From Macrostomum lignano (taxonomy: Eukaryota), in assembly GCA_002269645.1 (NCBI GenBank), contig NIVC01000874.1:248001-312000 (forward strand): a stretch of DNA of 64,000 nt. The letters are read 5' to 3'. The position numbers were made by a program, and so were the translations under genes. Numbering within the stretch: position 1 is the stretch's first letter; each line of letters starts with the position of its first letter. Below, in pieces: positions 28,701-60,994 of this stretch. Below the pieces are notes generated by a model. The model made no database searches. It saw only the letters and a list, made by a program, of their open reading frames with translations, and was not told the DNA's origin.

Positions 28701-28832
28701 TGGTCAGCTGCACTGTCTCGCCAATTATTTTGAATGGCATCTGTTTAAATTCTCGACTGCCTACTAACAGTAGGCAAATAAATTATTCTTTAATTTAGTC
28801 ATTGTCTATTGCAAACCCCGCAGCAGCCGCCA

Positions 28833-36820: not shown

Positions 36821-37036
36821 ATGCCCGAACCCCCTGCTACATGTTCGTGTGCAAGACGGTTCTCGAGCAACCGCAGGCCGCTGCTGCAGGTGCAGGTGTT
36901 GCTGCTTTTGTCCGGGATGCTTGTTGCCTACGTCTGTCTGCAGAGCTCAAGCGTCATCTATTCGGGTTTGAGCACGCGATACTCAGCTAGAAGCTTCCCC
37001 GACACGGATGACGACTTCGCCCACTTCGTATACTAA
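36821..37036 (+). pseudogene. Truncated inverted paralog of the glycosyltransferase N-terminus (TM anchor + stem, 71 aa)
   Basis: Hydrophobic segment followed by SFPDTDDDF, versus TFPVFNTDDDF in the minus-strand gene; identical 17-mer ACACGGATGACGACTTC at 37002-37018 (+) and 38052-38068 (-). Confidence 0.6.
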
Positions 37037-38678: not shown

Positions 38679-40832
38679 CTAGAAACTTGCGGAAATAAAA
38701 GACTGGGTTAAACTTACAAGGTAACCACTGAAATAGGCTAAACTGCAGGTTAGAAAATACCGCCATTCATAGAAGCTTTTGCCTCTTCCCTGATTTCATT
38801 CGGTTCCGCATGCAGAGCAGCGCCATGATGCGAATCAAATGCAGCTTATTGTAGGATTCACTGCCAATGCTGGCAGTCGCGCAATGCAATTCAAGTTCCG
38901 GAAATGCGTCAACTGACATGCGCAGCGTCTTCTGGACAGCCACATTGCTAGAAAATTTGCTGTTATAATTTGAACGTCGAATGAAATTGTTTCTGCATGA
39001 AGCAGAACTCGCAGGACGTTGCTGCTTGGAAAAATCAACCCCTCATCCCTTCTTTATTCAGCACATTTTTCATGGTGACAAAGAGAGCAGAGCAACGGCG
39101 CGTAAAGCCGCTGACATATCAGTGCTGGAATTGAGTACTGATCTGCGGGGGGCGCATTCAATTAATTTAAGCATTAATTTATTAAAATTCTTCGCATTTT
39201 AATGCTCTCACACAATGTTGAATGGAATTAAGACTAAAATCCAAAGTGTTCTACTTCTGGGCGCTTATCTTCTTCTGGGCGCTTATCTGCTTCCATTAAG
39301 GCTTTCCTGCCTATGTTGATGGTGACGAAGACAGACAACATACTCGTAGTGACTGAAACTGAATAGTTGTAATCCCGTTGCTTAACATTGGGACTAGTCG
39401 ATTGGAGAAATTCGATTGGAGCTGGATTGTGATTCCAGCCGTTTCGAAGTCTGGCTGAATTATGCTTGCTCAGTCTATATACTTCTTGGTCTGTGCTGGC
39501 TAAGTTAGAACAGGCCATGCAAGGAGACCGCGGACCGCAACAAGCCAACCAAAACCACAATGACCACAACAAGAGACAAAGCGAAATTGCAGACGCTTAA
39601 AGAACCGGCCTTCAAATATTTTTTTCCAACGACTTGCAAGTTGTCATTCAACTAACTCTATTTGTCCTTGTCTCGAACCTTCCACGATCTCTAAAGTACA
39701 GTTCTAAGGTTCGAAACTTCGCAAGCTCGAAACTTAAAAATTCAAAACATCTCAGAAGCTCGAAATTGTTTACCAAAAGAAATATAATTTGTTTTATAAC
39801 CATTTCTTGTAAAATTTCAAATCAAATCTACCTTCTATAACCTTGTACAACTATCCTGTTGCCGATAATTAAAATGATCATAATTGCGTTCATAAGGCGC
39901 TCTACATGGCCGCAGTACCGTGCCGCATGGCTGGATCACTCGATTCTACTGGCCGCGTTAGGCGTCAGAAAGTGGCCTGCAAACTTCCGATCGTTGATTA
40001 ATGGTTGTTGTCTGCCAGTCTCCTGAGTGACGGCACCTGGCTTTTGTGGGACAACTCTCTACGGTCAATGTTCTCAATAAACTTCACCAACTCCTTGTCC
40101 GCCATCAGCAGGTTGTTGTCATGGAAACGCCCGCAGGTTTTGCGGCGCTCGGACTCGAACAGGCTAGCAGACACTGCAGCACAGCAGTTGGCATATGAAT
40201 ACACGCTGTGTGTGTCTGTTGTAGGTCAGTGCACGCTGCGAATACAGGACACCAAGATCGCGATAGAAATGGTCCAGTGTACTTTGCGTGGTACATAGTC
40301 TACGCTCGCATGTTCGCGCGCCTGTAGCTGAGCCAGAGCAGCGCGTAATTGTGTTACACGACTATTACTACATGTAATTGTAACCTGTTTCCACCAGACT
40401 CGTGTTGTCCGTTTAGCTCAAATTATGACCCCCTGAAACTTCCTTAACTTCCATTGTCAGTCGGAATATTCAAATTTCGACGAAAACAAAGCAAACAGTT
40501 GAAGTACCGCAATACATATGGCACAAGTGCACTTTTATTTGTGACTGCGCAATCAAACCGGCAAAACCTACCAGCAGGACAGTTTAGGCAGGACATTCGG
40601 GAAGCAGGGATATGGATAGGGTGGAACATTCCTGGTGAGGAAGCAGTAGATATTTGTGCGATTTATTTTCTACTTTAACTACTTTGATACACTACTGCTC
40701 ACACTCACTACGGATCCCTCTACAGACGAAAGCTGCTAATACAAAAGCCTGGTACCCAGGTGCCCTTAATGACCGATATTACAGCCGTAGTTCTATCCAT
40801 ATGTTCAGAGATATTCAGATATCTCCCAATAT

Positions 40833-43754
40833 TTTCGGCTCAGCACAGAATCAAAGCACAAAACACAACAATGGCGTCGCAGTCACTTGGCGAACTGCCG
40901 CTGGAGAAGCCCGATCGAGCTCAAACCTGGATGACTGCCTTCCAAGCGCTGGCCCGAGCAAGGGACTGGACTGATAGTGATGGAAAGAAGACCATCGCAG
41001 ACAACTTTTTGGCGCACTGCGGGCTCACAGCCTTGGAGAAGATACAAAGCATAATCGCCCCCAAATCCGTGACCGACCTGACTTTTGATGAAATCAACAC
41101 TGCCGTGCAAGCGTACCTAAAGCCAAAGGAAAAGCTGGTCATCGCTGGACGCGTTCGTTTCTTCGCCATGCGGCAAGCACCAAATGAATCAGTTTCTGAC
41201 TTCGTTAGCCGACTTCGTCGTGCCGCTAAGGACTGTAAGTTTGATGATTTGAAGACATCCACCAGTCCTCTCGAGGAATTGCTCCAAATGGCGCTAATTT
41301 CTGGGCTCAGCAATGTAAACCAACAACAACGCGTTCTGGAAGCCACTCAGATCAAATCATTCAAGTCGGTTCCCGAAATTGTCGACTTTATTCGCGACCT
41401 AGAGCAGGTGACAGCTTTTGTGTCCATAAAATCAAGCGACTTTCAAGCGACTTTGACTCAGCCAGCTCCTTCAGTCCAAACACACGAAGCCTCTGTGCAT
41501 TACTCGCAGCGACATAATGGACATCGGAGTGTCAAGGACTGTCGTTACTGCGGCAAAGCACATTCGGAAGGAAAATGCCGGCTTTTGGCAAGCTCTGTTC
41601 AAAATGTGGTAAGAAAAATCACTTAACCAGTGTATGTCGCTCATCATCTGCACGGCCTGTGCACCAAGTCACTGACCCATCAGCTCATGAAATAGACAAT
41701 GAGCCACGTGAGAAGACTTCTCTGATGCATCTCAGCGACGTAGGCACCGTCCACGCTGTCAACGTGGCCACCGAGCCACTTATTATCGATGGCAAGACCG
41801 TCGACATGCAGATCGATACAGGCGCCTCCGTCTCCGTGCTCTCCAGTTCGCAATGGGAACGACTGGGTCGACCCTCGCTGCAGAAGTGTTTTCGGCGGCT
41901 AGAAGCCTTTGATGGTCACGTGATGAAATCACTCGGGAAGCTGGCATCGCCTTTTCCGCGGTGGCATCCCTCTGAACACATCGGCGAGAATCGGGCTCTG
42001 GGCTATGCATCTCATGCAATTTGACTTCAACATCGAGTACGTGCGAGGCCGCGACATTCCACACGCTGACGCTTTATCTCGGCTCCGCTGACGCTTTATC
42101 ACCCTTCAGCAGATGACAAGGAAACGTTTGATGCTATCAACGTCGTGGTATTTGAATCGCCGGTGATCGAGGCCGGAAGAATTTTGGCAGAAATGGACGC
42201 AGACCCGTTCACCCAGAAGATTTTAATGAGAGTACGCGATGGAAATTGGCAAGGGTGCTCGCAGGCAGAGTCAAGCTTCAAAGCCGTTTCCGAAAAGCTA
42301 ACGCTGGAAAACGGACTTCTTTACATGCAGAGGAGGGTTTACATCCCCCCACGGTTGCGCCGGGCTGCCTTTGACGCGATCCATGACACCCACTCTGGAA
42401 TTCAGGCCTCATACAACCTGCTTTCAGCGTCTTGCTGGTGGCCTGGGATGCAACAGGATGTGTCACGATTTGTCCAACGCTGCCCGGTCTGCAGCCGCCT
42501 ACGACCGCGTGTCGGCCACGACAGGGATCGATGGCCCGCCCCGGACTATCCATTCCAACGCATTCACATGGACTGGGCGCATGTAAGAGGAGCTGGCGAC
42601 ATACTGATTATCGTTGACGCTCATTCTGGCTGGATAGAAGCGTTTCCCTGCCAAAACAGAGTGGCCAGCACTGTCCAGCGGTGCCTCTGCGCCATCTTTG
42701 CACGCTTTGGTATGCCGGAGCTGGTTGTGTCAGACAACGCACCCGAATTTGTGGCCGATAGCCTTAACGCATGGCTGCGCGCACTTGGAGTGAAGAAAAT
42801 GGAGTCACCCGCCTATTATGCTCAGGCAAACGGCCTCGCAGAAAGGGCAGTGCAGACCGTTAAATCTGAGCTGCGTGCATGGTCGGAGAGAATAACTCAC
42901 ATGGATTTCCCATTCTACCTGCAAAAAGTGCTCATGCACCATCGCAACTCCTCAAGAAGCCGCGGCCAGTGCCCAGCCGAGTTGGTGCTTGGTAGACGCC
43001 TTCGTGTACCGGTCGTCTCACAGTTCGAGCAAGGAGACAACGTCATCTACCAGCCGCAGAAATCAACTCAGGGAAGCCAGGCTACATTTCTAATGACTGC
43101 TGGACACAATACGGCATGGATTTTAGAAGATGAGAGCCTGAAGCTGGCCAGCACCAATCAGTTGGCCCCACCAATGCCACAGCAGGACGCCCTTACAGCG
43201 GACGAAGAGGAAGCGAATGACAATCTGCCTGTGCAACAGCCCCCGATGCAAATGGCGGCCGGAGAAGAGCAGGCACCAACGACCCATGAGCAGGATGCCC
43301 CAGAGCAACCGAATGACAACCCGATGCGCCGAAGCTCGCGAAATCGTCGGGCCCCTGATCGATTTGTGCCGTTATTGCTGAACAGTATAGACGCTGATTA
43401 AATTCCAAACTTTCAACGAATTCGCCGTTACTTTGTTAAGCACCAAGCTCCCTAAGCTCACCCGTTCATACTCAAACCCACTAATCAATAACCACCAACG
43501 CTTTTCCGTTGCAGTTCTCATTCCCTCGAAGGGGGACATGTTGTATACCGATCCGAATCCAATGTACTTTTATTTTCAGTCGTTGCCCCAGCGTTAATTT
43601 ATTTGTCTGTGTCCCAAACAGCTACCGACTGACTCTGACTCTATAAAGGCTTGCCGTTACTTATATCGTTTAGCAAAATATACATTCAACTTAAGCTACG
43701 CTCTTGTTGTAACAGCTTTCGGCTCAGCACAGAATCAAAGCACAAAACACAACA
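40833..43754 (+). mobile_element. Ty3/Gypsy LTR retrotransposon, internally deleted (no RT), 5' LTR reduced to 38 bp
   Basis: gag from ATG 40871 with two Cys motifs (CRYCGKAH..C, CSKCGKKNH...C); protease DTGAS; RNase H tail IEYVRGRDIPHADALSR; integrase (H..H...C..C, HMD, SDN, NGLAERAVQT); PPT GAAGGGGGAC; 3' LTR TGT...ACA at 43539-43754. Confidence 0.92.
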
Positions 43755-44702: not shown

Positions 44703-45176
44703 TCAATGAGAACCCAAGCTGAACAGCTGCAGACTCCGTGAGCGCTTCTGAGCTTTGCTCGGATCAAAGGAGACCTGCCGAGCGAGCTGTGACACGGTCT
44801 GAGCAACGCAATAGTACTTTATAATTTCGCCTCTCTCATTTCTGAACTCGTACGGCTTCTCCGCCATGTGCCGCCTCACGAGAATCATGATGTCCTCCAG
44901 GTGCTTCTCCATGTAAAATGGCTCGATGTAGTCGCACAGGGTCTGCACGAAGACGCTGCCAGTCTGAGGGTCGCGGTAGGACACCTGACCCTCTGTGGTA
45001 GGGAAGCAGAACAGGAAGTCACTCTCTGGCGGGTACAGGGCCGGGTTCTGCGCGAACTCTGGGGGCAGCTGGTCGACTGCCAGTCCCCTGTGCGTCACTT
45101 CGTCTGTGCCACTGCCGCGGCAGGCCTGGACAAAGAAGATCTTCGGCTTGCCCGCCAGGTCGGGTCAGACGGAGGC
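44703..45176 (-). pseudogene. ANK-caspase copy A, exon 3 (QACRG + p10) with premature TGA at 45167-45165
   Basis: Acceptor cctcctccag; GCC TCC GTC TGA where copy B has TGC; downstream KPKIFFVQACRG...SDFLFCF..SYRD..GSVFVQTLC is intact. Confidence 0.85.
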
Positions 45177-45261
45177 CTGGAGGAGGGTTGGGAAATGTGT
45201 AGAAATTTGTAGAGCTGCAATGCTTTGCATCATATGCACAGATGAGCCAGACCAGACCCAC

Positions 45262-45619
45262 CTTGAACTTGGCTGCGAGCTCCAGAACCGGACTCTGCAC
45301 TCCATGGCCATCGATAATGCAGTCCCTTCTCTGTGCGTCCTTGCGGCCGTGGGCCATCAGGAAGCAGACAAAACTGCCGTGCTTGGCGAGCTCCTTGGAC
45401 TTCTTTGTCTCATTGAGGAAGTCATCGATCTCTGCAGTTGTGGGATTTTGCACCTCCTTGATGGTGAAACTCAGCTTCCTGAAAAGCTTCCTCACTCGGT
45501 CCACATCCCGCTCCGAGCCTTTGCGCTCCTCTTCGCCGCTGCCAGTTGAGTACGTGTTGATGTTGATGATGAGGCAGAATCCCTGCGGGTTCGTCACCTG
45601 GTAGAAATCCTCATGGAGT
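45262..45619 (-). CDS. ANK-caspase copy A, exon 2 (caspase p20 N-part, catalytic His in FLMAHG)
   Basis: PQGFCLIININ...RKGSERDV...FVCFLMAHG; acceptor gcattccag (phase 2), donor AAG|GTGGGT (phase 0); 85-bp intron follows. Confidence 0.9.
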
Positions 45620-46014
45620 CTGGAATGCAGCAGGGTGATCGGGGTGTGAAGCAATGAGTGCAGAACAAGAATCTCCGGAGACCTTTGCCTGATTCTGTGG
45701 GAAGTTTTGCCCGAGAATGCTATGGGATGCCGTGGAATGCTGTGGGCACACTGTATTATATATAATCTCTTCCTTACTAAACCTAAACTGATCATTGTTA
45801 TATCTCTGAAGAAAATAAAAATTAAGAACCAATCGAAGCAAATCATATTCTATGAGCGTTGCATGCAGCCCACAAAAAAGCTTTGACTTCATTTAAAAAT
45901 CTTTTTTTTCTTCAAAATTTAATGCTATTAATTAGCTCGTAAATCCAGCATTCAATTTTTAATGTCACTGTAAGAGACGTGCCAATATATCCGCTTTTTT
46001 CATACAAAACTTAC

Positions 46015-47339
46015 GGTACTGTCGGCGTCTTCTCAGACTGGGACCTCTGCTGGTCCCGCCGCTCAGCGATCCACCGCGTCAACTGAGACCCGTGCTGAGA
46101 GTTCAGCTTCGCGTAGTCAGCAACAGACTTTCGCTTCCATGGAAGAAAGTGCGAAGCATCCCTTAGATCAAGGACAGAGACACCCAGTAAGTCAACGATG
46201 AAGCTGAGCGTTTCGACATCTTGATATTGAGCAGCCACATGAGCCGCTGTAATCCCGTTAAAACCTCTTTTCAAAAGGCATGACCGGCCGAGTTGCTGAA
46301 CCAGCCACTTGAGACAGGAGTTAGTAGCTTCATTCCTAGCGGCCCAGTGAATGGCAGTGCGTTGGAGTCGGCCAGGCTGATGAAAGCAGTCGGATCCGAG
46401 GACTGATTTGAAGAACTGCATGGAATCGGCGCCCTGCTTCCAAGCAGCGAGATGGACGGGAGTGTTTCCTTGTTGGTCTCGAACGGAGAGACAGTCGGTT
46501 CCGCACTCGTTCACCAGCCACTTGAGACAGGAGTTAGTAGCTTCATTCGTAGCGGCATGGTGAATGGCAGTGCGTTGGCAATTGCCAGGCTGATGGAAGC
46601 AGTCGGATCCGAGGACTGATTTGAAGAACTGCATGGAATCGGCGCCCTGCTTCCAAGCAGCGAGATGGACGGGAGTGTTTCCTCGTTGGTCTCGAACGGA
46701 GAGACAGTCGGTTCCGCACTCGTTCACCAGCCACTTGAGACAGGAGTTAGTAGCTTCATTCGTAGCGGCATGGTGAATGGCAGTGCGTTGGCAATTGCCA
46801 GGCTGATGGAAGCAGTCGGATCCGAGGACTGATTTGAAGAACTGCATGGAATCGGCGCCCTGACACAAAGCAGCGAGATGGACGGGAGTGTCTCCTTCTT
46901 GGTCTCGAACGGAGAGACAGTCGGTTCCGCACTCGTTCACCAGCCACTTGAGACAGGAGTTAGTTTTTTCATTCGTAGCGGCACAGTGAATGGCAGTGCG
47001 TTTTATGTAGCCAGGCTGCTGGAAGCAGTCGCATCCGAGGTTTCGGTGAATGAGCTCCATCCATGACTCATCTAGATACAAGGCAGCCAGGTGCACTGGA
47101 GTGTTCATCTTCTCGTTGGTGCAGGTGAGGCATTTGGTTCCGAGTTTCTGAATGAGAGCCTCCATGCAGCTTAGACCGTCGGGAAGGCAGGCCACGTGGT
47201 GAGCAATGGACTGCTCCAACTGGTTGACGCTGACGGTATGGTTGGTGTCGAGCTGCCAGCAGAGATCGAGGAGGCTGTCTAGGTCCTTGGCAGCGAGTGC
47301 TGCAGCTACCAATGCGCGTATTGAGGCTTGCGGCTCCAT
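46015..47339 (-). CDS. ANK-caspase copy A, exon 1 (ankyrin array: N-cap, three 71-aa double-ANK units, C-cap)
   Basis: TPVHLAA / TAIHxAA ankyrin motifs; ends GTA CC|GTAAGT (phase 2), matching the phase-2 acceptor of the caspase exon. Confidence 0.9.
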
Positions 47340-48365
47340 GTGAGACAGGGCTGGGTGAGTCAGTGGCGGAGAGAGTGGGTGAGCGGACGATTAAATCTTG
47401 GCATTCAATGGCGGAGAGGATGTGCAGAGGCTGTTGCTGGGTAATGAGATCAAATACTGATTCGTTCAGCCTTGCGTTGCAGGGTTAGATACTGTAGCCT
47501 GGAAAGAGCCTCGCATGAGTCAAACATTAGTTAAATGGTTCTAGTCTTCAAGCCAATGTACGTTGAAATCTTTCCTCCAAGAAAGACTATCGCTATGTAC
47601 ACTGCGGCACTGATTCGTCTTCTTATCGCGGCCGTTTCAAGTGAAATTCTCCAGCAGTCTTTTGGGGGAGGGGGCAGGTGGGTGTTTTAATAGTTTATGT
47701 TTGGCATAACGTTTGGCATGTACGCAAGTGTATGTACATTTGCTCGCTGTACAATGCAAGCGTGTCAGAATACAAGCGAGTGCCTTGGCGGCAGTCAAGT
47801 GTCGGTCTACGCCTTAAGCCACTTTCTCGTCTCGGCTTATTCTATGACTAAAGGCTCGTCCACACCGCCATCAAATGAAGCCAATTTTGAAGTGATCACA
47901 CTAAATTTGAGTTGATTATTAACGAATCCTTGACAATCACCTCAGTTTTTCACGCCATCAACTGACTTTTTACGAGTGATCGCAAGCGGTCACACTGCAA
48001 TCAACCGACTGATACTGAGGAGAATGACTGCCCTGTGGATAATTGGGACGTTTCTTCGGCAGCATTTTTTGCTGGAAACGGACTAAAGCAGACAGAAATT
48101 CTGTGGTCTCCGCAGTGCTAGAGGAAACTGCTTAATTCGGCAGTTTCGTCACGCTAAATGTGCGGAAACGAAGAAAGAAACGAATTAAAATATTGAGTCG
48201 TTTCCTACGCAGTTTTCAACCAAAGGATCGTCCTTTTTCCTGTTATTTCGATTGTCAGGGTGCCGAAGGTAGTATAGAACAGGATTTTCTTGCACCTTCT
48301 TTACCAGGGGTTTCAGTGGCAACCAACGGGCGCTGTTTTTTCACGCTTGCTCATTTCGCTTATGT

Positions 48366-48719
48366 CAGGGGTCGGCAAACTTTTTTACCTCAACGGCCAG
48401 ATAGAGGACCTAGAGCATGACTCCGGAGGAAGGAGAAGATGAGAGGTAATAAAAAAGAAAGAAGGGAGATAGGAGAGGCGAGGGAATGGAGCAAAGAGGA
48501 GACGAGAGGAGACGAGAGATGAATTAGGTTAGGAGAGTAGAAAAGAGGAGAGAGAGGGAGAGGAGGAAGGAGAGAGGAGAGGAGAGGAGAGAAGAGCGCT
48601 GAGAAGAGACAAACATTAAGGGCCGGATTGCTATTGTGGAGTTTCAAAGGACGGCGAAGGCCGGATAGAGAGGCTTTGCAGACCGCATGTGGCCTGCGGG
48701 CCGAAGTTGCCGACCCGGG
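48366..48719. mobile_element. hAT (Charlie-like) MITE with an AG-rich interior
   Basis: Left end CAGGGGTCGGCAAAC, right end GTTGCCGACCC; flanking 8-mers GCTTATGT and GCTCATGT (one mismatch). Confidence 0.8.
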
Positions 48720-49029
48720 GCTCATGTGATGCAGAATAATAAAATAGTTAAAAACCTGACTGGTGTGATGACCAATCAATTGTGAAGCGACAGTCAGACT
48801 AGACGGAGGGTTGTTGAAATAGAGTGGCTTGAGTTGAGTTTTGTGTGTTGTGCAACTTGGGGTGCTGTGTAAGACGCAAGCAACCAATGTACAGCGTTTT
48901 AGTTGATCAACTGGCACTCGCTTTATTAACATTTGTCGCTGAATTTGAAAATTTGCAGTGTGAATGAGCCTTAATGAAAATGAAGGCAGCTCAAGTGCAG
49001 AGAGCTGCAGTAGCAGTAGCCCAGCCCCA

Positions 49030-50200
49030 AGCTAGTTTTGTCAACATGTTTTAGCGGCCGCCTCAATACCAGCTGGACAGGACTTTGAGCGTTGGCTGGC
49101 CAGATTCAACAATTTTGCATCTTCCTGTGGATCTGCGCAAGAATGTGCTGCTGTCATTCCTCGACGATAAATCATATCAAGCGGCCAGCATTTTAGATGC
49201 TTCCCGAGTCCCAGGACGGCTTTGAGAAGGCTCTGAAAAATCGATTTCGGCCATCGACATCATCTGCAGGCGCAGTTCTTCAATCTCACTCAAAAGGACG
49301 GTCAGTCGGTTGCAGACTATTCCGATGCTTTGATTGTTGCGGCAAAGCGCGCTTTCCCGAGTTGGTGGAGACGAAAGCAGGAGACGTCAGTGACAGCGAA
49401 GGATGAGCTGCTCAAAGGTCGGTTTCTATCCGGATTGAGGGACCCAGCTGTGCGAATGCAGATGCAGATGCAGCCAAAGGCGAAATTCGCTGATGCGGTG
49501 GAAACAGCGCGATTCGTGGAATCTATACAGTCGCAAGGAGCCGCAGCTACGGATCTAGCTGCTGAGGTTCCCGAAGCCTTTGCATTCGAAATTCAACGGT
49601 CTCTGCAGGAGCTGTCCAACAAGCTCAATCGCTGGGAGACAAAGGACCAGGATCATCGAGAGAGTGGCGACAGACGCAGAGTTGTGACATGCTGGAAGTG
49701 CGGTAGGCCGGGCCATGTTCAAAGATTTTGCACTCAGAAATCAGGAAACTTCGGTGGAGCGGCGACCGCCGGGGTGCCGTTCCTCAAGTGAAAATCTCAG
49801 TGCACCCAGTGGTGGAGGTGTCCTGCTCAGCCACTGGTGCTAACGTGCTGGTGAACTGTAGCATCCTGCCAATGTGTTTCCCTTCGGAGTCCCGTAGTCG
49901 GTGCACACCGACCAGGCTCGGAACTGGGAGTCGCAGCTGTTTCAAGAGACGATGCGGCTGCTGAAAATCGACAAGACTCGGACGACAGGCTACCACCCTG
50001 AAGGAGACGGCGGTTGCGAATGGATGAACCGGACGCTGGTGCAGCTGTTGCGAGCATGAGTAAACGAGAATCAGCGAGACTCGGATCTTTATCTGCAGAT
50101 TGCACTGATGGGCTACCGCACTTCAGTCCACAAGTCTATTGGTCAGACACCTTCGGCGATGCATTTCGGCGAGAACTGCGGGGCGCACATGCAACACAAC
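49030..50200 (+). mobile_element. Decayed Gypsy remnant (gag with CCHC knuckle; integrase fragment)
   Basis: RFLSGL...CWKCGRPGHVQRFC; then KTRTTGYHPEGDG..ERMNRTL...YRTSVH..IGQTP; pol largely deleted. A ~54-bp segment is shared by 47794-47842 and 50262-50310. Confidence 0.75.
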
Positions 50201-50319
50201 AGTCAAGTGTCAAGTCAAGTGAAGTGTCAGTCAAGTGTCAATCAGTGTCGGTCAATCACAGTCAAGTGTCGGTCTACGCCTTAAGCCACTTTCTCGTCTC
50301 GGCTTATTCTTACACTGCT

Positions 50320-51200
50320 GTGAAAGGCAACATCCGACGCAACTCTCGACCATCCATCAGAAAGCTCGCCACAGAGCACGAATTGGCCGGCAACAATGTC
50401 CATGCAGCGTGTCTAATTGCTACGAGCGTAGTAGTACAAATAATCCAACACGGAACTGAAGGACTGACACATATAAGAGCAGCAGAGGCTAAAATTAGCA
50501 GCAAAGTTTTAACAGTTGGAAGATGGTTTCTTGAGGCGAGGGCGAGGCTATGTTTAGAAGCCCTATTTGCGAAAACGTTCTGCGCACACACGCACAACGA
50601 TAAAACGGCCCAATTAGGGGCAAATACACGAAAAAACGATAATTGTCAGTTTTCATGCATAAATCTGACGCAGCGACCGATGAAGAACGACCTGCATCTG
50701 CGCTCGATAGTTCGCCATTTGCTACTGAGACGCAGAAGGCAAAGCAGGGATCGCGCGATCTGCTGCTGATATGGATGAAGAGCCGGAGACGCTGGTCGCA
50801 CGATCGTCTTCGCGCGGACGAGAAACTGTTCTACTGTTGACCCTGTGCGCAACCGCTGCAACAACCGAGATTTCCTGCATCACCGCCGCAAAGCTTCTGG
50901 CGGCCATCGTCGGAGTCGTCTTCACTGACGGTCGGAAGGCGCCGGCGATCTTTGTGCCGTTCAGCCGGAAGGGGTTGCAGTGTACCAGCAGCTGCTGCAG
51001 GCTCCTGGATGGCAACTATGTGTGACAGCAGGATGGAGCTCCATAACGACGAGGCGTTTCCTCGACGGGGCGATGACCGACTACTGGCCTCCCAGCATGT
51101 GGCCGCCGTCAACTTCGGACCTTTAATCCCTTGGATTAGGGCATCTGAGCGCACGTGTAGTCCAAGGCCAGCGTTTATTGTCACACGAAATTTTTTCATC
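50320..51200 (+). mobile_element. Decayed Tc1/mariner transposase pseudogene
   Basis: KGNIRRNSRPSIRKLA (HTH); DGRKAPAIFV; YV*QQDGAP; WPPSMWPPSTSDL-NPLD*GI*; several stops and frameshifts. Confidence 0.7.
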
Positions 51201-51739
51201 GTCCCTGCGACAAAAATGTCCGAGGACTTCATTGTTCAGATGAAGCATACCGAGCTTTCCCACAGCAGGTTGTGGACAGTGGGGGGGGGGTGATGGCTTG
51301 AGGATGTTGCTGATGACTTGCGCGTGAAGTTGCATGCCGACTAAAAGTGTTGCTTTTTCGCGAAGTTGCTGCGAGGTGTAGCGAGGCCAGCCTCAAGAGA
51401 CATGAAACTCGTGACTTTTTCGATATTGCAGCTGATGAATTTATGAGCTTGTAATATTTGAAGTTGCGAAACACGCCCCTCTCGAGTCAGGGGGGGTCTA
51501 TTCACCTTCTAATGTCGTTTTAGGTTTCTTGCAAGCAGTGTAAGATTAATATAGGCCAGTTTTATTAGTTCTAAAGTTTCCAGACGATTTCTGTTTAAAA
51601 AATTACAATTTTTCTAGATGGATCTGCTTGATAAGGCTCCCCTTATTCACATTGTCGCGCGAGTGAATCAGTAATTTCATACAATTTATCCATTCTCACA
51701 CAGACATTCTTTACAAACACTCACACGGTATCGCAGTCT

Positions 51740-52150
51740 CACAGACAGTCATCACACATTTGTCACAGAGTCTCGCACAGTATCACACAGTATCACAGAG
51801 TCATACACAGTCTTACACAGTATCTCACAGTATCACACAGTCTCACAAAGTATCACAAAGTCTCACACAGTATCACACAGTATCACACAGTATCACACAG
51901 TCTCACACAGTCTCACACAGTATCACAAAGTATCACACAGTATCACACAGTATCACACAGTCTCACACAGTATCACACAGTATCACACAGTCTCACAAAG
52001 TATCACAAAGTCTCACACAGTATCACACAGTATCACACAGTATCACACAGTCTCACACAGTCTCACACAGTATCACACAGTATCACACAGTATCACACAG
52101 TCTCACACAGTCTCACACAGTATCACAAAGTATCACACAGTATCACGCAG
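51740..52150. repeat. 10-bp minisatellite AGT(A/C)TCAC(A/C)C
   Basis: Direct reading. Confidence 0.93.
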
Positions 52151-52849
52151 ATTCACAGACTTCTGAAGTACACTCACAGTGTCAGATTTCTTACACATCT
52201 GCCTGCTGCTTGCATTTCAGGAGCATGTGAAATGCTTTAAAGTTACTTTCAGTAGCCATAAGCGGAAAAGTTACTTTAAATTTCCTGAAAAAATCTTCTA
52301 AATCTCAGCATCGGAGTTAGGAGTGCGTCACGCGTCATTGCCGTTCTCGGTCTGGGCTGGGGCTCAGCTTCACAGACACTCGAATGCTCATTTTCTTTTC
52401 ACTGAGTTGAGAACAGTCAACCAACCTCACCGCCCCTGCAGGCTTTGAGCACAGAGGCAGCTGAGCAGCAGAAAAAGCTTCGGACGGTAGGGGGTGGCTT
52501 CGGGTTGTATGACAGAGATGCAGCTTCGTTTCTAAGAAAACAGACCCCAAGCCCTCTGTTTTTAGCAACCGACCGCCCGCCCCCCTTCCAGAGCATTTTA
52601 CTGCGGCAGTCCTGGCCACTTGAATAAACTGCAATGAGGGGTGGGGGGTCAAAGCCCTCGCTTGACAACAAAAATATCATTATTTTGGATTCGTTTCAAC
52701 TCAAATGCTTTTGCAGGGTGTCTTCTCTGCATCTGCGTCTCAACTTTACTCGCCTCCAGTTTCACCGCTCTTTCTCAGCTCTGCTTCAAAGGGCTTGAGC
52801 AAGTTTTAGGACAGTATACTCGTATAGTGACTTCCAGTGCATCAGTTCA

Positions 52850-53525
52850 CCTGACTCTCATTCCCGATCTCTCTAACTCTCAATGCCAATCCTCTCTGAC
52901 TCTCATTCCCGATCTCTCTAACTCTCAATGCCAATCCTCTCTGACTCTCATTCCCGATCTCTCTAACTCTCAATGCCAATCCTCTCTAACTCTCAATGCC
53001 AATCCTCTCTGACTCTCAATGCCAATCCTCTCTAACTCTCAATGCCAATCCTCTCTGACTCTCATTCCCGATCTCTCTAACTCTCAATGCCAATCCTCTC
53101 TAACTCTCAATGCCAATCCTCTCTGACTCTCAATGCCAATCCTCTCTGACTCTCAATGCCAATCCTCTCTGACTCTCAATGCCAATCCCTCTGACTCTCA
53201 TTCCCGATCTCTCTGACTCTCAATGCCAATCCCTCTGACTCTCATTCCCGATCTCTCTGACTCTCAATGCCAATCCCTCTGACTCTCATTCCCGATCTCT
53301 CTGACTCTCAATGCCAATCCCTCTGACTCTCATTCCCGATCTCTCTGACTCTCAATGCCAATCCCTCTGACTCTCATTCCCGATCTCTCTGACTCTCAAT
53401 GCCAATCCCTCTGACTCTCATTCCCGATCTCTCTGACTCTCAATGCCAATCCCTCTGACTCTCATTCCCGATCCCTCTGACTCTAAATGTTAATCCCTCT
53501 GACTCTCAATGCCAATCCCTCTGAC
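52850..53525. repeat. Minisatellite of alternating 21/22-bp units (ctctgactctcattcccgatct / ctctgactctcaatgccaatc)
   Basis: Direct reading. Confidence 0.92.
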
Positions 53526-53619
53526 TTTCATTGCTAATTCTAAAGCAATGAGGGCAAGGAGCATTGCTAATTCTTCTTTTCTCCACTGCAGAAAAAACCC
53601 TGTCAAATGTCAAGTTAGA

Positions 53620-54013
53620 AGACAGAAAGAGAGAGGAGAGAAGGAGAGAGACAGGGAGAGAGAGGAGAGAAGGAGCGAGACAGAAAGAGAGGGGAGAGAA
53701 GGAGAGATACAGGGAGAGAGAGGAGAGAAGGAGAGGGACAGAGAGAGAGGAGAGAAGGAGCGAGACAGAAAGAGAGAGGAGAGAAGGAGAGAGACAGAGA
53801 GAGAGAGGAGAGAAGGAGAGAGACAGAAAGAGAGAGGAGAGAAGAAGAGAGACAGAGAGAGAGAGGAGAGAAGGAGCGAGACAGAAAGAGAGAGGAGAGA
53901 AGGAGAGAGACAGAGAGAGAGAGGAGAGAAGGAGCGAGACAGAAAGAGAGAGGAGAGAAGGAGAGAGACAGACAGAGAGAGGAGAGAAGGAGAGAGACAG
54001 AGAGAGAGGAGAG

Positions 54014-54053
<40 letters not shown>

Positions 54054-54112
54054 GGAGAGAGACAGAGAGAGAGAGGAGAGAAGGAGAGAGACAGAGAGAG
54101 AGAAAAAGAGAC
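53620..54112. repeat. Purine-rich (GA) compound repeat
   Basis: Direct reading. Confidence 0.92.
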
Positions 54113-54606
54113 AAAAGCGTCTCGCACGGCTTCCATGCTTGAGTTGAGCTGCAATCGAGTCGCATAGGCAGCCACTGCGACTCAGCCCTGGCCTGTTTAG
54201 ATGCCTTTTTATCATTGTTGCCTCTGCTGCAGCCAGCGAGAGAAGATACTCAGCCTTTCACCCCGCACCGAATCTCTGAGCACAGCCGCACCCTGTGCTC
54301 TCAAGCCGCAATTGTCTCTCTGCGCCTCCCTCCCTAGACTCGAACCCGTTTTCATTTCGGCGGTCTCTGAGTGAAGCTGGCAGCATCCATGTTTCTAAGA
54401 AAACAGCTCTCAGTTTTGTTGGTAGCGACGGCAAAGTCTGCTCTAATTTGTGTATTTGGAGTTGGTCTTGCGCTGAGAATGAGACTTGCAATTGGAATTG
54501 AAAATGTAACTTAGGCACAGTGAGCAGATGAAAACTTGAATAGATGCGGTAGCAACACTACATAATATGTACCATCAGCTGAAAAACTAAAGGTAGATGA
54601 AAAAAA

Positions 54607-55760
54607 TCAAGTAGTCTCTGGGTTCACAGTTATGAGAGAGTAGGCAGAGTCAAGTAAGCATCAAGTAGTCACTGAGGTCACAGTTATAAGAGAGCAGGCA
54701 GAGTCAAGTAAGCATCAAGTAGTCTCTGGGGTCACAGTTATGAGAGAGCAGGCAGAGCCAAGTAAGCATCAAGTAGTCTCTGGGGTCACAGTTATAAGAG
54801 AGCAGGCAGAGTCAAGTAAGCATCAAGTAGTCACTGGGGTCACAGTTATAAGAGAGCAGGCAGAGTCAAGTAAGCATCAAGTAGTCTCTGGGTCACAGTT
54901 ATAAGAGAGCAGGCAGAGTCAAGTAAGCATCAAGTAGTCACTGGGGTCACAGTTATGAGAGAGCAGGCAGAGTCAAGTAAGCATCAAGTAGTCACTGGGG
55001 GTCACAGTTATGAGAGAGTAGGCAGAGTCAAGTAAGCATCAAGTAGTCACTGGGGGTCACAGTTATGAGAGAGTAGGCAGAGTCAAGTAAGCATCAAGTA
55101 GTCACTGGGGTCACAGTTATGAGAGAGTAGGCAGAGTCAAGTAAGCATCAAGTAGTCTCTGGGGTCACAGTTATAAGAGAGCAGGCAGAGTCAAGTAAGC
55201 ATCAAGTAGTCACTGGGGGTCACAGTTATGAGAGAGTAGGCAGAGTCAAGTAAGCATCAAGTAGTCACTGGGGTCACAGTTATGAGAGAGTAGGCAGAGT
55301 CAAGTAAGCATCAAGTAGTCACTGGGGGTCACAGTTATGAGAGAGTAGGCAGAGTCAAGTAAGCATCAAGTAGTCACTGGGGTCACAGTTATGAGAGAGT
55401 AGGCAGAGTCAAGTAAGCATCAAGTAGTCACTGGGGTCACAGTTATGAGAGAGTAGGCAGAGTCAAGTAAGCATCAAGTAGTCACTGGGGTCACAGTTAT
55501 GAGAGAGTAGGCAGAGTCAAGTAAGCATCAAGTAGTCACTGGGGGTCACAGTTATGAGAGAGCAGGCAGAGTCAAGTAAGCATCAAGTAGTCACTGGGGG
55601 TCACAGTTATGAGAGAGTAGGCAGAGTCAAGTAAGCATCAAGTAGTCACTGGGGTCACAGTTATGAGAGAGTAGGCAGAGTCAAGTAAGCATCAAGTAGT
55701 CACTGGGGGTCACAGTTATGAGAGAGTAGGCAGAGTCAAGTAAGCATCAAGTAGTCAACA
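54607..55760. repeat. 54/55-bp minisatellite downstream of ANK-caspase copy B, ~21 copies
   Basis: Unit caagtagtcactggggtcacagttatgagagagtaggcagagtcaagtaagcat. Confidence 0.96.
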
Positions 55761-55841
55761 TCAAACGACAAGAACTTAACAAGTGGCTAATAAGCATCAA
55801 ATATAACATGACAGACTTCACTCTGATTCTGCAACATGTTT

Positions 55842-56315
55842 TCAACGAGAACCCAAGCTGAACAGCTGCAGACTCCGTGAGCGCTTCTGAGCTTTGCTCG
55901 GATCAAAGGAGACCTGCCGAGCGAGCTGTGACACGGTCTGAGCAACGCAATAGTACTTTATAAGTTCGCCTCTCTCGTTTCTGAACTCGCACGGCTTCTC
56001 CGCCATGTGCCGCTTCACGAGAATCATGATGTCCTCCAGGTGCTTCTCTGTGTAAAATTGCTCGATGTAGTCGCACAGGGTCTGCACGAAGACGCTGCCA
56101 GTCTGAGGGTCGCGGTAGGACACCTGACCCTCTGTGGTAGGGAAGCAGAACAGGAAGTCACTCTCTGGCGGGTACAGGGCCGGGTTCTGCGCGAACTCTG
56201 GGGGCAGCTGGTCGACTGCCAGTCCCCTGTGCGTCACTTCGTCTGTGCCACTGCCGCGGCAGGCCTGGACAAAGAAGATCTTCGGCTTGCCCGCCAGGTC
56301 GGGGCAGACGGAGGC
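55842..56315 (-). CDS. ANK-caspase copy B, exon 3 (intact QACRG + p10)
   Basis: ASVCPDLAGKPKIFFVQACRGSGTDEVTH...SYRDPQTGSVFVQTLC...GSR*; 474 bp, open. Confidence 0.93.
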   Translation of the reverse strand, partial: ASVCPDLAGKPKIFFVQACRGSGTDEVTHRGLAVDQLPPEFAQNPALYPPESDFLFCFPTTEGQVSYRDPQTGSVFVQTLCDYIEQFYTEKHLEDIMILVKRHMAEKPCEFRNERGELIKYYCVAQTVSQLARQVSFDPSKAQKRSRSLQLFSLGSR

Positions 56316-56400
56316 CTGGAGGAGGGTTGGGAAATGTGTAGAAATTTGTAGAGCTGCAATGCTTTGCATCATATGCACAGATGAGCCAGACCAGACCCAC

Positions 56401-56758
56401 CTTGAACTTGGCTGCGAGCTCCAGAACCGGACTCTGCACTCCATGGCCATCGATAATGCAGTCCCTTCCCTGTGGGTCCTTGCGGCCGTGGGCCATCAGG
56501 AAGCAGACAAAACTGCCGTGCTTGGCGAGCTCCTTGGACTTCTTTGTCCCATTGAGGAAGTCATCGATCTCTGCAGTTGTGGGATTTTGCACCTCCTTGA
56601 TGGTGAAACTCAGCTTCCTGAAAAGCTTCCTCACTCGGTCCACATCCCGCTCCGAGCCTTTGCGCTCCTCTTCGCCGCTGCCAGTTGAGTACGTGTTGAT
56701 GTTGATGATGAGGCAGAATCCCTGCGGGTTCGTCACCTGGTAGAAATCCTCATGGAGT
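56401..56758 (-). CDS. ANK-caspase copy B, exon 2 (p20 N-part, AHG)
   Basis: 358 bp with the same splice sites and phases as copy A; three substitutions seen relative to A. Confidence 0.92.
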
Positions 56759-57150
56759 CTGGAATGCAGCAGGGTGATCGGGGTGTGAAGCAATGAGTGC
56801 AGAACAAGAATCTCCGGAGACCTTTGCCTGATTCTGTGGGAAGTTTTGCCCGAGAATGCTATGGGATGCCGTGGAATGCTGTGGGCACACTGTATTATAT
56901 ATAATCTCTTCCTTACTAAACCTAAACTGATCATTGTTATATCTCTGAAGAAAAAAGACCTAAAAACCAATCGAAGCAAATCATATTCTATGAGCGTTGC
57001 ATGCAGCCCACAAAAAAGATTTGACTTCGTTCAAAAAAGTTTTTTTTTCAAAATGTAATGCTATTAATTAGCTCGTAAATCCAGCATTCAATTTTTAATG
57101 TCACTATAAGAGACGTGCCAATATATCCGCTTTTTTCATACAAAACTTAC

Positions 57151-59568
57151 GGTACTGTCGGCGTCTTCTCAGACTGGGACCTCTGCTGGTGCCGCCGCTC
57201 AGCGATCCACCGCGTCAACTGAGACCCGTGCCGAGAGTTCAGCTTCGCGTAGTCAGCAACAGACTTTCGCTTCCATGGAAGAAAGTGCGAGGCATCCCGT
57301 AGGTCAAGGACAGAGACACCCAGTAAGTCAACGATGAAGCTGAGCGTTTCGACATCTTGATATTGAGCAGCCAGATGAGCCGCTGTAATCCCGTTAAAAC
57401 CTCGTTTCAAAAGACATGACCGGCCGAGTTGCTGAACCAGCCACTTGAGACAGGAGTTAGTAGCTTCATTCCTAGCGGCCCAGTGAATGGCAGTGCGTTG
57501 GAGTCGGCCAGGCTGATGGAAGCAGTCGGATCCGAGGACTGATTTGAAGAACTGCATGGAATCGGCGCCCTGCTTCCAAGCAGCGAGATGGACGGGAGTG
57601 TCTCCTTGTTGGTCTCGAACGGAGAGACAGTCGGTTCCGCACTCGTTCACCAGCCACTTGAGACAGGAGTTAGTCTCATTCATAGCGGCCAAGTGAATGG
57701 CAGTTTCTTGTAAGTAGCCAGGCTGATGGAAGCAGTCGGATCCGAGGACTGATTTGAAGAACTGCATGGAATCGGCGCCCTGCTTCCAAGCAGCGAGATG
57801 GACGGGAGTGTTTCCTTGTTGGTCTCGAACGGAGAGACAGTCGGTTCCGCACTCGTTCACCAGCCACTTGAGACAGGAGTTAGTAGCTTCATTCTCAGCG
57901 GCACAGTGAATGGCAGTGCGTTGGAATCGGCCAGGCTGATGGAAGCAGTCGGATCCGAGGACTGATTTGAAGAACTGCATGGAATCGGCGCCCTGCTTCC
58001 AAGCAGCGAGATGGACGGGAGTGTTTCCTCGTTGGTCTCGAACGGAGAGACAGTCGGTTCCGCACTCGTTCACCAGCCACTTGAGACAGGAGTTAGTAGC
58101 TTCATTCACAGCGGCCCAGTGAATGGCAGTGCGTTGTACGCAGCCTGGCTGATGAAAGCAGTCGGATCCGAGGACTGATTTGAAGAACTGCATGGAATCG
58201 GCGCCCTGCTTCCAAGCAGCGAGATGGACGGGAGTGTTTCCTTGTTGGTCTCGAACGGAGAGACAGTCGGTTCCGCACTCGTTCACCAGCCACTTGAGAC
58301 AGGAGTTAGTCTCATTCATAGCGGCCAAGTGAATGGCAGTTTCTTGTAAGTAGCCAGGCTGATGGAAGCAGTCGGATCCGAGCACTGATTTGAAGAACTG
58401 CATGGAATCGGCGCCCTGCTTCCAAGCAGCGAGATGGACTGGAGTCTTTCCTCGTTGGTCTCGAACGAGAGACAGTCGGTTCCGCACTCGTTCACCAGCC
58501 ACTTGAGACAGGAGTTAGTCTCATTCATAGCGGCCTGGTGAATGGCAGTGCGTTGGAATCGGCCAGGCTGATGAAAGCAGTCGGATCCGAGGACTGATTT
58601 GAAGAACTGCATGGAATCGGCGCCCTGACAGAAAGCAGCGAGATGGACGGGAGTGTCTCCTTCTTGGTCTCGAACGGAGAGACAGTCGGTTCCGCACTCG
58701 TTCACCAGCCACTTGAGACAGGAGTTAGTAGCTTCATTCTCAGCGGCACAGTGAATGGCAGTGCGTTGGAATCGGCCAGGCTGATGGAAGCAGTCGGATC
58801 CGAGGACTGATTTGAAGAACTGCATGGAATCGGCGCCCTGAAACAAAGCAGCGAGATGGACGGGAGTGTTTCCTTGTTGGTCTCGAACGGAGAGACAGTC
58901 GGTTCCGCACTCGTTCACCAGCCACTTGAGACAGGAGTTAGTAGCTTCCCTAGCGGCCAGTGAATGGCAGTGCGTTGTACGCAGCCTGGCTGATGAAGCA
59001 GTCGGATCCGAGGACTGATTTGAAGAACTGCATGGAATCGGCGCCCTGACAGAAAGCAGCGAGATGGACGGGAGTGTTTCCTTGTTGTCTCGAACGGAGA
59101 GACAGTCGGTTCCGCACTCGTTCACCAGACTTGAGACAGAGTTAGTAGCTTCATTCTCAGCGGCACAGTGAATGGCAGTGCGTTGGAATCGGCCAGGCTG
59201 ATGGAAGCAGTCGGATCCGAGGACTGATTTGAAGAACTGCATGGAATCGGCGCCCTGCTTCCAAGCAGCGAGATGGACGGAGTGTCTCCTTGTTGGTCTC
59301 GAACGGAGAGACAGTCGGTTCCGCACTCGTTCACCAGCCACTTGAGACAGGAGTTAGTCTATTCATAGCGGCCAAGTGAATGGCAGTTTCTTGTAAGTAG
59401 CCAGGCTGATGGAAGCAGTCGGATCCGAGGACTGATTTGAGAACTGCATGGAATCGGCGCCCTGCTTCCAAGCAGCGAGATGGACGGGAGTTTTCCTTGT
59501 TGGTCTCGAACGGAGAGACAGTCGGTTCCGCACTCGTTCACCAGCCACTTGAGACAGGAGTTAGTAGC
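57151..59568 (-). CDS. ANK-caspase copy B, exon 1 (at least 10 double-ANK units + C-cap; 5' end lost in the gap)
   Basis: About 213-bp tandem units; donor CC|GTAAGT at 57150. Scattered 1-bp deletions above ~58430 are probably low-quality sequence near the gap. Confidence 0.85.
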
Positions 59569-59722
59569 NNNNNNNNNNNNNNNNNNNNNNNNNNNNNNNN
59601 NNNNNNNNNNNNNNNNNNNNNNNNNNNNNNNNNNNNNNNNNNNNNNNNNNNNNNNNNNNNNNNNNNNNNNNNNNNNNNNNNNNNNNNNNNNNNNNNNNNN
59701 NNNNNNNNNNNNNNNNNNNNNN
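59569..59722. other. Assembly gap (154 N)
   Basis: Run of N; true size unknown. Confidence 0.99.
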
Positions 59723-59745
59723 AAAATGAGTTTCACTGTACGTAC

Positions 59746-60627
59746 CAGTTCTCCACTGACTGCCGCTTGTTCTGCGACTCTCTGTGGCTGTTCGTTCTGC
59801 TCCTGCTCCTGGGTCTCTCTCCTGCTCCTGGTCTTCTGCTGCCTGCCCTGGTCTTCTGCTCCTGCCCTGGTCTTCTGCTCCTGTCCTTTTCTTCTGCTCC
59901 TGCTCCTGAGTCTTCTGCTCCTGCCCTGGTCTTCTGCTCTGCTCCTGGTCTTCTGCTCCTGTCCTGGATCTCCTGCTCCTGGATCTTCTGCTCCTGGTCC
60001 TTCTCTTCCCATTAGGCGCCCTCCCAGCTCGGCGACAAACTTCAGCAGCCGAGATCCGTGCTGAACGTTCTGCTCCATGTAGTCGGCCACCGAATTCCCG
60101 TCAGCGTCGAGAAGGTCGAACGCGGAAACGCCCAGCGAGTCCACGACGAGGCGAAACGAGTCCAGGTCTTGGTTCTGAGCAGCCAGGTGAGCAGGCGTAG
60201 CTCCATCCGAGTCTCTGTCCAGCAGGCAGGCTGGGCCGAGCTTTTCGACAAGAAACCTCAACGAGCTGCTGCTGGCTTCGTTCATGGCGGCCCAGTGAGC
60301 GGCGGTGCGCTTGAGCTGGCCGGGCTGCTTGAAGCATCGGGTCCGAGGGTTCGGAATGAGCCTCCAGCCATGACTCATCCTGGTGCATGGCGGCCAGGTG
60401 CACCGGAGTGTTTTGGTATTCGTTAACGCAGGTGAGGCAGTCGGTCCGAACTTCTCAATGAGAGCTCCAGACAGCAGAGTCCGCCAGGCAGCTGAGCGAC
60501 GTGGTGAGCCACCGTCTGCTTGCGATTGCGCACGGTGAGCTGCAGCATCGAGTCCATGTTGCAGCAGAGGGGAGCAGCCGGTCCGGCTCCCTGACATGGA
60601 GAGCGATGGAGACCGACAGAGCTCCAT
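59746..60627 (-). CDS. Third, divergent ankyrin paralog (copy C): N-cap + core + C-cap without the expanded units, then an E/Q/D-rich linker; frameshifted
   Basis: Across frames: TVAHHVAQLPGGLCCL, NTPVHLAAMHQDESWL, CFKQPGQLKRTAAHWAAMNE, GATPAHLAAQNQD, SVADYMEQNVQHGSRL, each matching copy A caps; candidate donor CTG|GTACGT at 59745. Confidence 0.7.
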
Positions 60628-60994
60628 GAGCTCTGTTTTCTTCTTTTGCATGCCGGTAGAAGCAAGCATTTTGGAGCAGGTAAGGCGAGTAGCAGAGTAG
60701 AGCTGTGCTCAGTTGAGCGAGTGTACGAAGTATTTATACCGACAGTGCGCTCTCAACTCTCAAGTCGGCCTGCAGCCAGCTGTCTACTAGCAGTAGGCAG
60801 TCTGCATTTTTGGCTCCTGCCTAAATACTTGAAGTAAGAGACCCGAGGCTGCTGATTTAAGCAAAATATACAATACCTTCACAGCAGTGCTAGCAAAATT
60901 GTCTCCATGGCAACTGTCTCTATGATGTATTTCAATATCCATGGTGCACTGTGTTCATAGTGAACTGTCTCCAGTCTCCTGTACAGACCATATC

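Follow-up and report, generated by a model that had tools for sequence, protein, structure and literature searches.

Two tandem ankyrin-caspase genes in the free-living flatworm Macrostomum lignano

Structure and public annotation of the two genes

The window analysed here is a stretch of 64,000 nucleotides (nt) from the Macrostomum lignano scaffold NIVC01000874.1 (assembly GCA_002269645.1, also known as Mlig_3_7), covering positions 248,001 to 312,000 of its forward strand. On the minus strand of this window, two tandem genes, here named copy A and copy B, lie 11.1 kb apart, and in each of them an array of ankyrin repeats is joined to a caspase domain. Both genes follow the same three-exon plan, in which one large ankyrin exon is followed by two caspase exons (Table 1), and they are 97-99% identical to each other, exons and introns alike. 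The region probably consists of two recent tandem duplicates of a M. lignano caspase gene whose long pro-domain is made of ankyrin repeats and not of a CARD or a DED, and whose product would be an initiator-type zymogen.

The first exon of copy A encodes a unique N-terminus, three full double-ankyrin units of 71 amino acids (aa) each, and a unique C-terminal portion with additional repeats and a linker. Its product is identical to residues 1-442 of the public protein P0002 (BOX15_Mlig020959g1). In both copies, intron 1 starts with GTAAGT, ends with CAG and interrupts the frame in phase 2, and the join across it reads ...EKTPTVP/LHEDFYQVTNPQGFCLIININ (a slash marks a splice junction or, where stated, a cleavage position). 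The join between exons 2 and 3 is likewise common to the two copies and reads AKFK/ASVCPDLAGKPKIFFVQACRG. The spliced open reading frame (ORF) of each copy is continuous across the ankyrin-caspase join, with the ankyrin repeats at the N-terminal side. An earlier note on this DNA had described these genes from the sequence, and its coordinates, splice sites, phase-2 join, second intron of 85 nt, and residues have all been reproduced.

Table 1. Features of the ankyrin-caspase locus, in window coordinates
Feature	Positions	Strand	Description
Copy A exon 1	47339..46015	-	ATG at 47339; 442-aa ankyrin array; ends GTA CC/GTAAGT, phase 2
Copy A intron 1	46014..45620	-	395 nt, GTAAGT...CATTCCAG; acceptor ...CATTCCAG/A CTC CAT GAG at 45619
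Copy A exon 2	45619..45262	-	N-terminal part of caspase p20: LHEDFYQVTNPQGFCLIININ ... AHG ... AKFK
Copy A intron 2	45261..45177	-	85 nt, GTGGGT...CCTCCAG; identical to copy B intron 2
Copy A exon 3	45176..44703	-	Remaining p20 (QACRG), intersubunit linker, p10, stop codon
Copy B ankyrin ORF sharing the frame of the caspase exons	58502..57151	-	First ATG 58403-58401; ends GTA CC/GTAAGT
Copy B intron 1	57150..56759	-	392 nt; donor at 57151
Copy B exon 2	56758..56401	-	S1 Arg in ERKGSERD (56664-56662); catalytic His in AHG (56490-56488)
Copy B intron 2	56400..56316	-	85 nt
Copy B exon 3	56315..55842	-	Catalytic Cys in QACRG (56261-56259); linker Asp in SGTD (56243-56241) and LAVD (56213-56211); second S1 Arg in SYRD (56114-56112); stop codon
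Copy B upstream array	59568..58503	-	Further 213-nt units; frame broken by 1-nt deletions
Scaffold gap	59569..59722		154 N; conceals the copy B 5' end and/or the 3' part of gene C
Gene C, third divergent ankyrin-module 5' exon	60669..59723	-	C-terminal part 51% identical to that of copy A

All close protein matches of these genes come from M. lignano. Copy A corresponds residue for residue to P0002 (GenBank BOX15_Mlig020959g1, 564 aa), which maps to NIVC01000874.1 and is spliced as proposed here, while P0001, which resembles copy A but keeps the Cys codon, shows 98% identity over the junction. The neighbouring annotated gene on the scaffold gives a 694-aa product with Ank and Peptidase_C14 domains and ends at window position 55842. 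A length of 694 aa also results when the in-frame ORF of copy B is read from its first ATG, and this length, the end coordinate and the Pfam content point to copy B as the source of the annotated product. Both window genes are thus already present as Ank+Peptidase_C14 entries in GenBank and UniProt. The Mlig_3_7 annotation is a genome-guided transcriptome, built from RNA sequencing (RNA-seq) reads with StringTie and TACO by a pipeline that splits transcripts at sites of trans-splicing and polyadenylation (PMC5730564). Since the gene models derive from an RNA-seq assembly, the junction has indirect transcript support. The ankyrin-caspase fusion proposed in the earlier note matches these public models, and it is real.

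Caspase domain, ankyrin module and surrounding sequence

In both genes, the two caspase exons together specify a complete domain of the caspase-3/7/8 type. On the spliced product of copy B, Pfam detects Peptidase_C14 with an E-value of 1e-41 over 213 of the 233 profile positions, and the best sequence matches of the caspase part in the PDB are zebrafish caspase-3 and human caspase-7 and -3, with E-values of 5e-31 and weaker. The catalytic dyad of copy B is formed by the His of AHG and the Cys of QACRG, and the two arginines of ERKGSERD and SYRD align with those of RNGTD and SWRN in zebrafish caspase-3 (PDB 5jft), which confirms the residues singled out earlier (AHG, QACRG, RKGSERD and SYRD) as intact and aligned with those of solved caspases. 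A predicted S1 pocket for Asp, composed of the two Arg and the Gln of QACRG, is therefore present, and the protease is predicted to be Asp-specific. Copy A also encodes AHG and QACRG, yet its QACRG lies downstream of an in-frame TGA (45167-45165, minus strand), which precedes the catalytic Cys by 15 codons. In copy B and P0001, this position is occupied by TGC (Cys), and it is at this TGA that the annotated P0002 stops.

Following the active site, copy B holds two linker Asp residues, in SGTD and LAVD. Both positions (QACRGxxxD and xxxD) are kept across the ankyrin-bearing paralogues, in a linker that is predicted to be disordered. The AlphaFold model of the junction-spanning protein P0001 has a predicted local distance difference test score (pLDDT) above 90 in the caspase core, with a disordered intersubunit linker (residues 277-295), and Foldseek places it at a template modelling score (TM-score) of about 0.9 to caspase-3, -7, -8 and -9. 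Paralogues with identities of 36-49% retain the 'Ank-(D/E)FYPVTNPQG' arrangement, the active-site residues and the two aligned linker Asp positions. The catalytic Cys is gone in some members of the family, such as P0011, which has QAGRG, and P0021, which has QTSQK.

The ankyrin arrays (46300-47040 in copy A and 57436-59568 in copy B) are built of a 213-nt unit which encodes 71 aa, equivalent to two ankyrin repeats, with an identity of 92-94% between units. The number of units differs between the genes, with three full ones in copy A (3.5 copies) and at least 10 in copy B. A recurrent in-frame variant of 3 nt is also found among the units, where NETNS stands in place of NEATNS. Upstream of the caspase domain, Pfam sees only ankyrin families on the spliced copy-B product (Ank_2 with an E-value of 6e-42, plus Ank, Ank_3, Ank_4 and Ank_5), in agreement with the proposal that the array occupies the place that normally belongs to a CARD or DED pro-domain.

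In a search of 5.8 billion proteins, eight of the nine matches to the ankyrin module with an E-value of at most 1e-8 belong to M. lignano, and the ninth, P0234, is a weak match with 31% identity from a sequencing-run assembly. As judged from these matches, the module is lineage-specific. It is not tied to caspases, and stands alone in P0012 and P0230-P0233. In P0015, it is found together with a protein kinase, with 44% identity and a common N-terminus and tail ('VADYA...H...WI.E.R.QQ'). In the P0015 gene (locus L002, 3001-5200), the ankyrin part occupies one 5' exon, and the intron after it measures 75 nt. The gene has in common with the window genes the general plan of a 5' module exon, an intron and an effector, but differs from them in the partner domain and in the phase and position of the intron. 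Exon shuffling through a shared intron phase was considered as the origin of the ankyrin-caspase and ankyrin-kinase combinations and rejected: the introns lie 20 and 37 residues past the conserved Trp, respectively, and are of phase 2 in the window genes and apparently of phase 0 in P0015. P0015 may also relate to the M. lignano caspase with a 'kinase-like pro-domain' described in PMC11463336.

Among the matches listed in a PDB sequence search, the nearest solved ankyrin arrays are those of NOMPC, TRPA1, latrocrustotoxin and ankyrin-1. A relationship to the array of RNase L was rejected, as RNase L is absent among the 60 listed of the 83 PDB matches with an E-value of at most 0.001. The likeness to RNase L is one of concept only, in that an ankyrin array lies N-terminal to an effector within one chain, and it extends to the ankyrin-kinase paralogue P0015. 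The one-chain sensor for innate immunity that the earlier note put forward alongside this analogy is speculative. The effector is in this case a protease, and no 2-5A-type ligand is known for it.

Beyond the scaffold gap lies gene C, a third and divergent ankyrin-module exon, which contains approximately three frame shifts and ends in a low-complexity tail rich in Q, E, K and R that derives from a 19-nt repeat (59795-59981). A possible GTACGT donor is located near 59746, and any downstream exons are lost in the gap. The spacer between copies A and B (47400-55800) is filled with repeats. It includes a gag-like zinc-knuckle ORF with an integrase fragment (49197-50100, plus strand), a 10-bp microsatellite (51745-52150), a 22-bp repeat (52851-53538), an AG-rich 29-bp repeat (53620-54103), and a 54-bp satellite in 21 copies (54606-55757). 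Elsewhere in the window, retroelement ORFs are found at 3018-5014 (minus strand; non-long-terminal-repeat reverse transcriptase and RNase H), 21745-25083 (minus strand; a 1112-aa LINE-like endonuclease and reverse transcriptase), and 40760-43401 (plus strand; gag and integrase of the long-terminal-repeat type). The 1112-aa ORF is contained in an AT-rich block from approximately 12 to 28 kb, with a GC content of 25-40% against about 50% elsewhere. Host-gene-like ORFs are present at 28809-30845 (plus strand; Cys-rich and RING-like, with a C-terminal RRM-like part), 36987-38162 (minus strand; possibly a type II membrane or glycosyltransferase-like protein), and 6001-7224 (minus strand; a PDZ-like exon).

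Relationship to the published ANK caspases

Caspases with ankyrin pro-domains, known as ANK caspases, have already been described in platyhelminths (Lee et al. 2014, as cited in PMC11463336), and were analysed across the phylum, together with one annelid case, in Genome Biology and Evolution in 2024 (PMC11463336). In that work, the ANK-caspase clade is stated to be restricted to parasitic flatworms and adjoins the DED caspases in the published tree, and the only M. lignano entry is a caspase with a kinase-like pro-domain (PMC11463336). The novelty of the architecture implied by the earlier note therefore does not hold, as ANK caspases are published (PMC11463336) and both genes are deposited in GenBank and UniProt. 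That note had also reckoned with the possibility that the architecture is already widespread and characterised. It is indeed on record, yet rare and functionally uncharacterised. Because the fusion is present in public models and the architecture is described in flatworms, what is new is the lineage and the free-living host only.

The combination of ankyrin repeats and a caspase domain is rare overall. When 146 representative caspase-8-like proteins were screened by phmmer with a consensus ankyrin sequence, ankyrin repeats were found in four of them, three from Neodermata and one from a jellyfish gene model. The latter, P0250 from Sanderia malayensis (1127 aa), has the order Ank-caspase-Ank-caspase and may represent two merged tandem genes. 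This model points to one more, independent occurrence of the ankyrin-caspase architecture, in Cnidaria.

Homologues were searched with the schistosome protein P0054 as query in an exhaustive HMMER search, followed by Pfam and name look-ups, which recovered neodermatan ankyrin-caspases from Schistosoma japonicum (TNN08539.1), the monogenean Cichlidogyrus (KAL3319427.1) and Taenia solium (KAL5963490.1). Neighbour-joining (36 caspase domains, 245 columns, 500 bootstraps), a distance method whose deep nodes are weak here, places the ankyrin-caspases of M. lignano in two clades. The first one is represented by P0043 from M. lignano, an Ank+caspase protein of 599 aa (locus L003, 3001-6919), which groups with the neodermatan sequences with 84-90% bootstrap. 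The ANK caspase of the parasites thus has an orthologue in the free-living M. lignano. The second one is a separate, Macrostomum-only caspase clade with 94% bootstrap, which contains the window genes, the ankyrin-caspases P0008/P0009 and P0006/P0011, and the LRAT-caspases P0014 and P0021. Proteins of this clade carry at their N-terminus an LRAT domain or an ankyrin array, the latter of three kinds.

The window genes, together with P0003, joined the clade of P0043 and Neodermata in none of the 500 bootstraps. A union of both clades was recovered in 0.2-2.4% of the replicates, and in 28% when the sponge sequences were left out and P0024 was included. In this tree, two sponge caspases of 528-539 aa form the sister of the window clade (84%). 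The gene structures differ as well. The P0043 gene has five exons, with the ankyrin region distributed over three of them, an intron inside FFIQ/ACRG, and none at the boundary between pro-domain and caspase, whereas the three exons of the window genes are separated by introns at this boundary and at AKFK/ASV. The separate clade and the different gene structure indicate that no orthology links the window genes with the published ANK caspases; orthology to that clade was considered and found unsupported by the bootstraps with and without the sponge sequences.

The window genes and the platyhelminth ANK caspases, such as the 'caspase-8'-like ones of Schistosoma, nevertheless have in common the phylum and an ankyrin array at the N-terminus, followed by a long linker and a whole caspase domain with QACRG. 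They differ in that their identity is only 29-32%, the window array is made of the lineage-specific 71-aa double repeat, and the window host is free-living. The LRAT-caspases P0014 and P0021 belong to the caspase clade of the window genes (94%) but carry another pro-domain.

The LRAT (PF04970)-caspase fusions P0014 (locus L004), P0019 and P0021 all fall in the Macrostomum-only clade, and their pro-domain type was not found in PMC11463336. P0021 lacks both QACRG and the S1 Arg. Another caspase-domain protein, P0114 from an ENA assembly (630 aa), holds a STING/TMEM173 domain (PF15009).

Proposed mode of action, alternatives and meaning

The reading of these proteins as initiator-type zymogens is based on their long pro-domain. 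The ankyrin solenoid would serve as a platform which binds a protein or a ligand and gathers several molecules, and this proximity would drive the dimerisation of the caspase domains, followed by autoprocessing at the linker Asp residues (SGTD and LAVD). A further cut may take place at the conserved acidic residue of the pro-domain boundary (cleavage position LHED/FYQV), and the released Asp-specific protease would act in cell death or in a stress or immune response. The intact active site, the disordered linker, the conserved linker Asp residues and the acidic residue at the boundary agree with an initiator-type zymogen.

Among known systems, the DED caspases (caspase-8 and -10) have in common with the window genes a long non-catalytic pro-domain ahead of p20/p10 and the presence of linker Asp residues, and the acidic residue of the window proteins aligns close to the pro-domain cleavage Asp of caspase-8 (cleavage positions LHED/FYQ and QISD/KVY, respectively). 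The window proteins, however, have no death-fold domain, and the only Pfam families upstream are those of ankyrin. The effector caspases-3 and -7 are the best solved matches both by sequence (E-value 5e-31) and by fold (TM-score of about 0.9), with identical active-site residues, but their pro-domains are short, and the window genes fall outside the executioner group, which contains P0040 and P0056 from M. lignano.

Several observations weigh against the zymogen reading of this locus. Neither window copy holds a clean full-length ORF, given the TGA of copy A and the 5' frameshifts and gap of copy B. The transcript support for the junction is the published annotation only, and no expression data were found, as the gene ID turned up neither in the full-text literature searched nor in the supplements of two M. 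lignano transcriptome papers. In 395 comparable codons, the copies differ by 6 synonymous and 13 non-synonymous substitutions, with a ratio of non-synonymous to synonymous differences per site (pN/pS) of 0.64, and the caspase part contributes 10 non-synonymous and 1 synonymous of these. These counts, which are small, and introns that match the exons in conservation give no indication of purifying selection after the duplication. The ankyrin tail of the P0001 model has a pLDDT of 36-69, for which reason contacts between ankyrin repeats and caspase are not read from it. Finally, a full-text literature search returned no functional study of ANK caspases, and none of them has a known ligand, partner, substrate or phenotype.

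Some of these observations would fit an alternative in which both window copies are decaying duplicates, or pseudogenes, perhaps transcribed but giving no active protease, with functional members elsewhere in the genome. The TGA of copy A precedes QACRG and the annotated product ends there, several deletions break the frame of the copy B array, whose in-frame ORF lacks a native start, the substitutions in the caspase part are mainly non-synonymous while introns have diverged about as much as exons, the DV1 genome is highly redundant (PMC5730564), and paralogues without the catalytic Cys exist (P0011 and P0021). Copy B has, however, a fully open catalytic domain (277 aa in two exons) with all key residues intact, and the TGA of copy A may be specific to an allele or an error, since P0001 has an intact Cys codon. 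The single-base deletions of copy B fall mostly in short homopolymers (units B1-B3 and B6) within approximately 1.1 kb of the scaffold gap, the usual signature of consensus error in a PacBio-based assembly, which suggests that they are of this kind, and the caspase part, with twelve differences, offers too little for a test of selection. Decay of both copies is considered unlikely. A much less credible alternative, very improbable in view of the evidence, is a single transcription unit holding two genes, one for the ankyrin ORF and another for the caspase exons. The caspase mRNA would then arise by spliced-leader trans-splicing at the CAG acceptor, and the ankyrin protein would stop at the TAA within the GTAAGT donor. 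Many M. lignano mRNAs are indeed trans-spliced, with about 7% of the assembled transcripts being polycistronic precursors (PMC5730564), and read-through of the donor meets this TAA stop immediately. Nevertheless, the first in-frame ATG past the acceptor is the Met of FLMAHG, and a start at this position would lose the first beta-strands and the S1 Arg. In addition, the reading frames agree across intron 1 in both copies, the annotation pipeline kept a single gene despite cutting at trans-splice sites, and divergent paralogues (36-49% identical) and neodermatan orthologues are likewise single Ank+caspase proteins. Separate genes joined by trans-splicing were accordingly rejected, for want of a usable in-frame ATG and because the divergent paralogues keep the fusion and its (D/E)FYPVTNPQG boundary.

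A further alternative accepts the fusion and concerns the role of the array, which might be a constitutive tether or an autoinhibitory module, for example an anchor to the cytoskeleton or the membrane, rather than a sensor of danger or ligands, with the truncated or dead members acting as cFLIP-like regulators. The nearest solved ankyrin arrays among the matches listed do scaffold or tether (NOMPC, TRPA1 and ankyrin-1), natural dead or truncated members exist (copy A as annotated, P0011 and P0021), and the ankyrin-only paralogues could associate heterotypically. On the other hand, the unit number of three versus at least 10, and the occurrence of the same module on a caspase, on a kinase or on nothing, resemble a fast-evolving recognition family more than a housekeeping tether, so this role is possible but rather unlikely. 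It is doubtful that the window genes represent a second, independently assembled ankyrin-caspase lineage, forming a modular family of one-chain sensor-effectors for innate immunity or regulated cell death. According to this speculative proposal, one lineage-specific ankyrin module for recognition, whose 71-aa units vary in number, might in a fast-evolving Macrostomum family be placed on a caspase, a kinase or nothing, which is held just as doubtful. The same low expectation applies to its last part, in which the neighbouring caspase clade would swap other heads, such as LRAT, following a logic perhaps analogous to that of NLRs and RNase L. The preferred reading remains that of two recent tandem duplicates of an initiator-type caspase gene with a long ankyrin pro-domain.

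For the family as a whole, the presence of P0043 in the free-living M. lignano means that ANK caspases are not confined to parasitic flatworms, contrary to PMC11463336. The same protein undercuts the view that selection for the ankyrin pro-domain accompanied the transition to parasitism. M. lignano holds, besides, a separate and expanded clade of ankyrin- and LRAT-caspases, to which the window genes belong. Neither window copy is a clean ORF, and the immediate value of these genes is comparative and annotational, not mechanistic. ANK caspases are discussed as drug targets in schistosomes, and both RNA interference and transgenesis are workable in M. lignano. Since these tools work there, M. 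lignano could serve as a harmless laboratory model in which to study the activation mechanism of ANK caspases.

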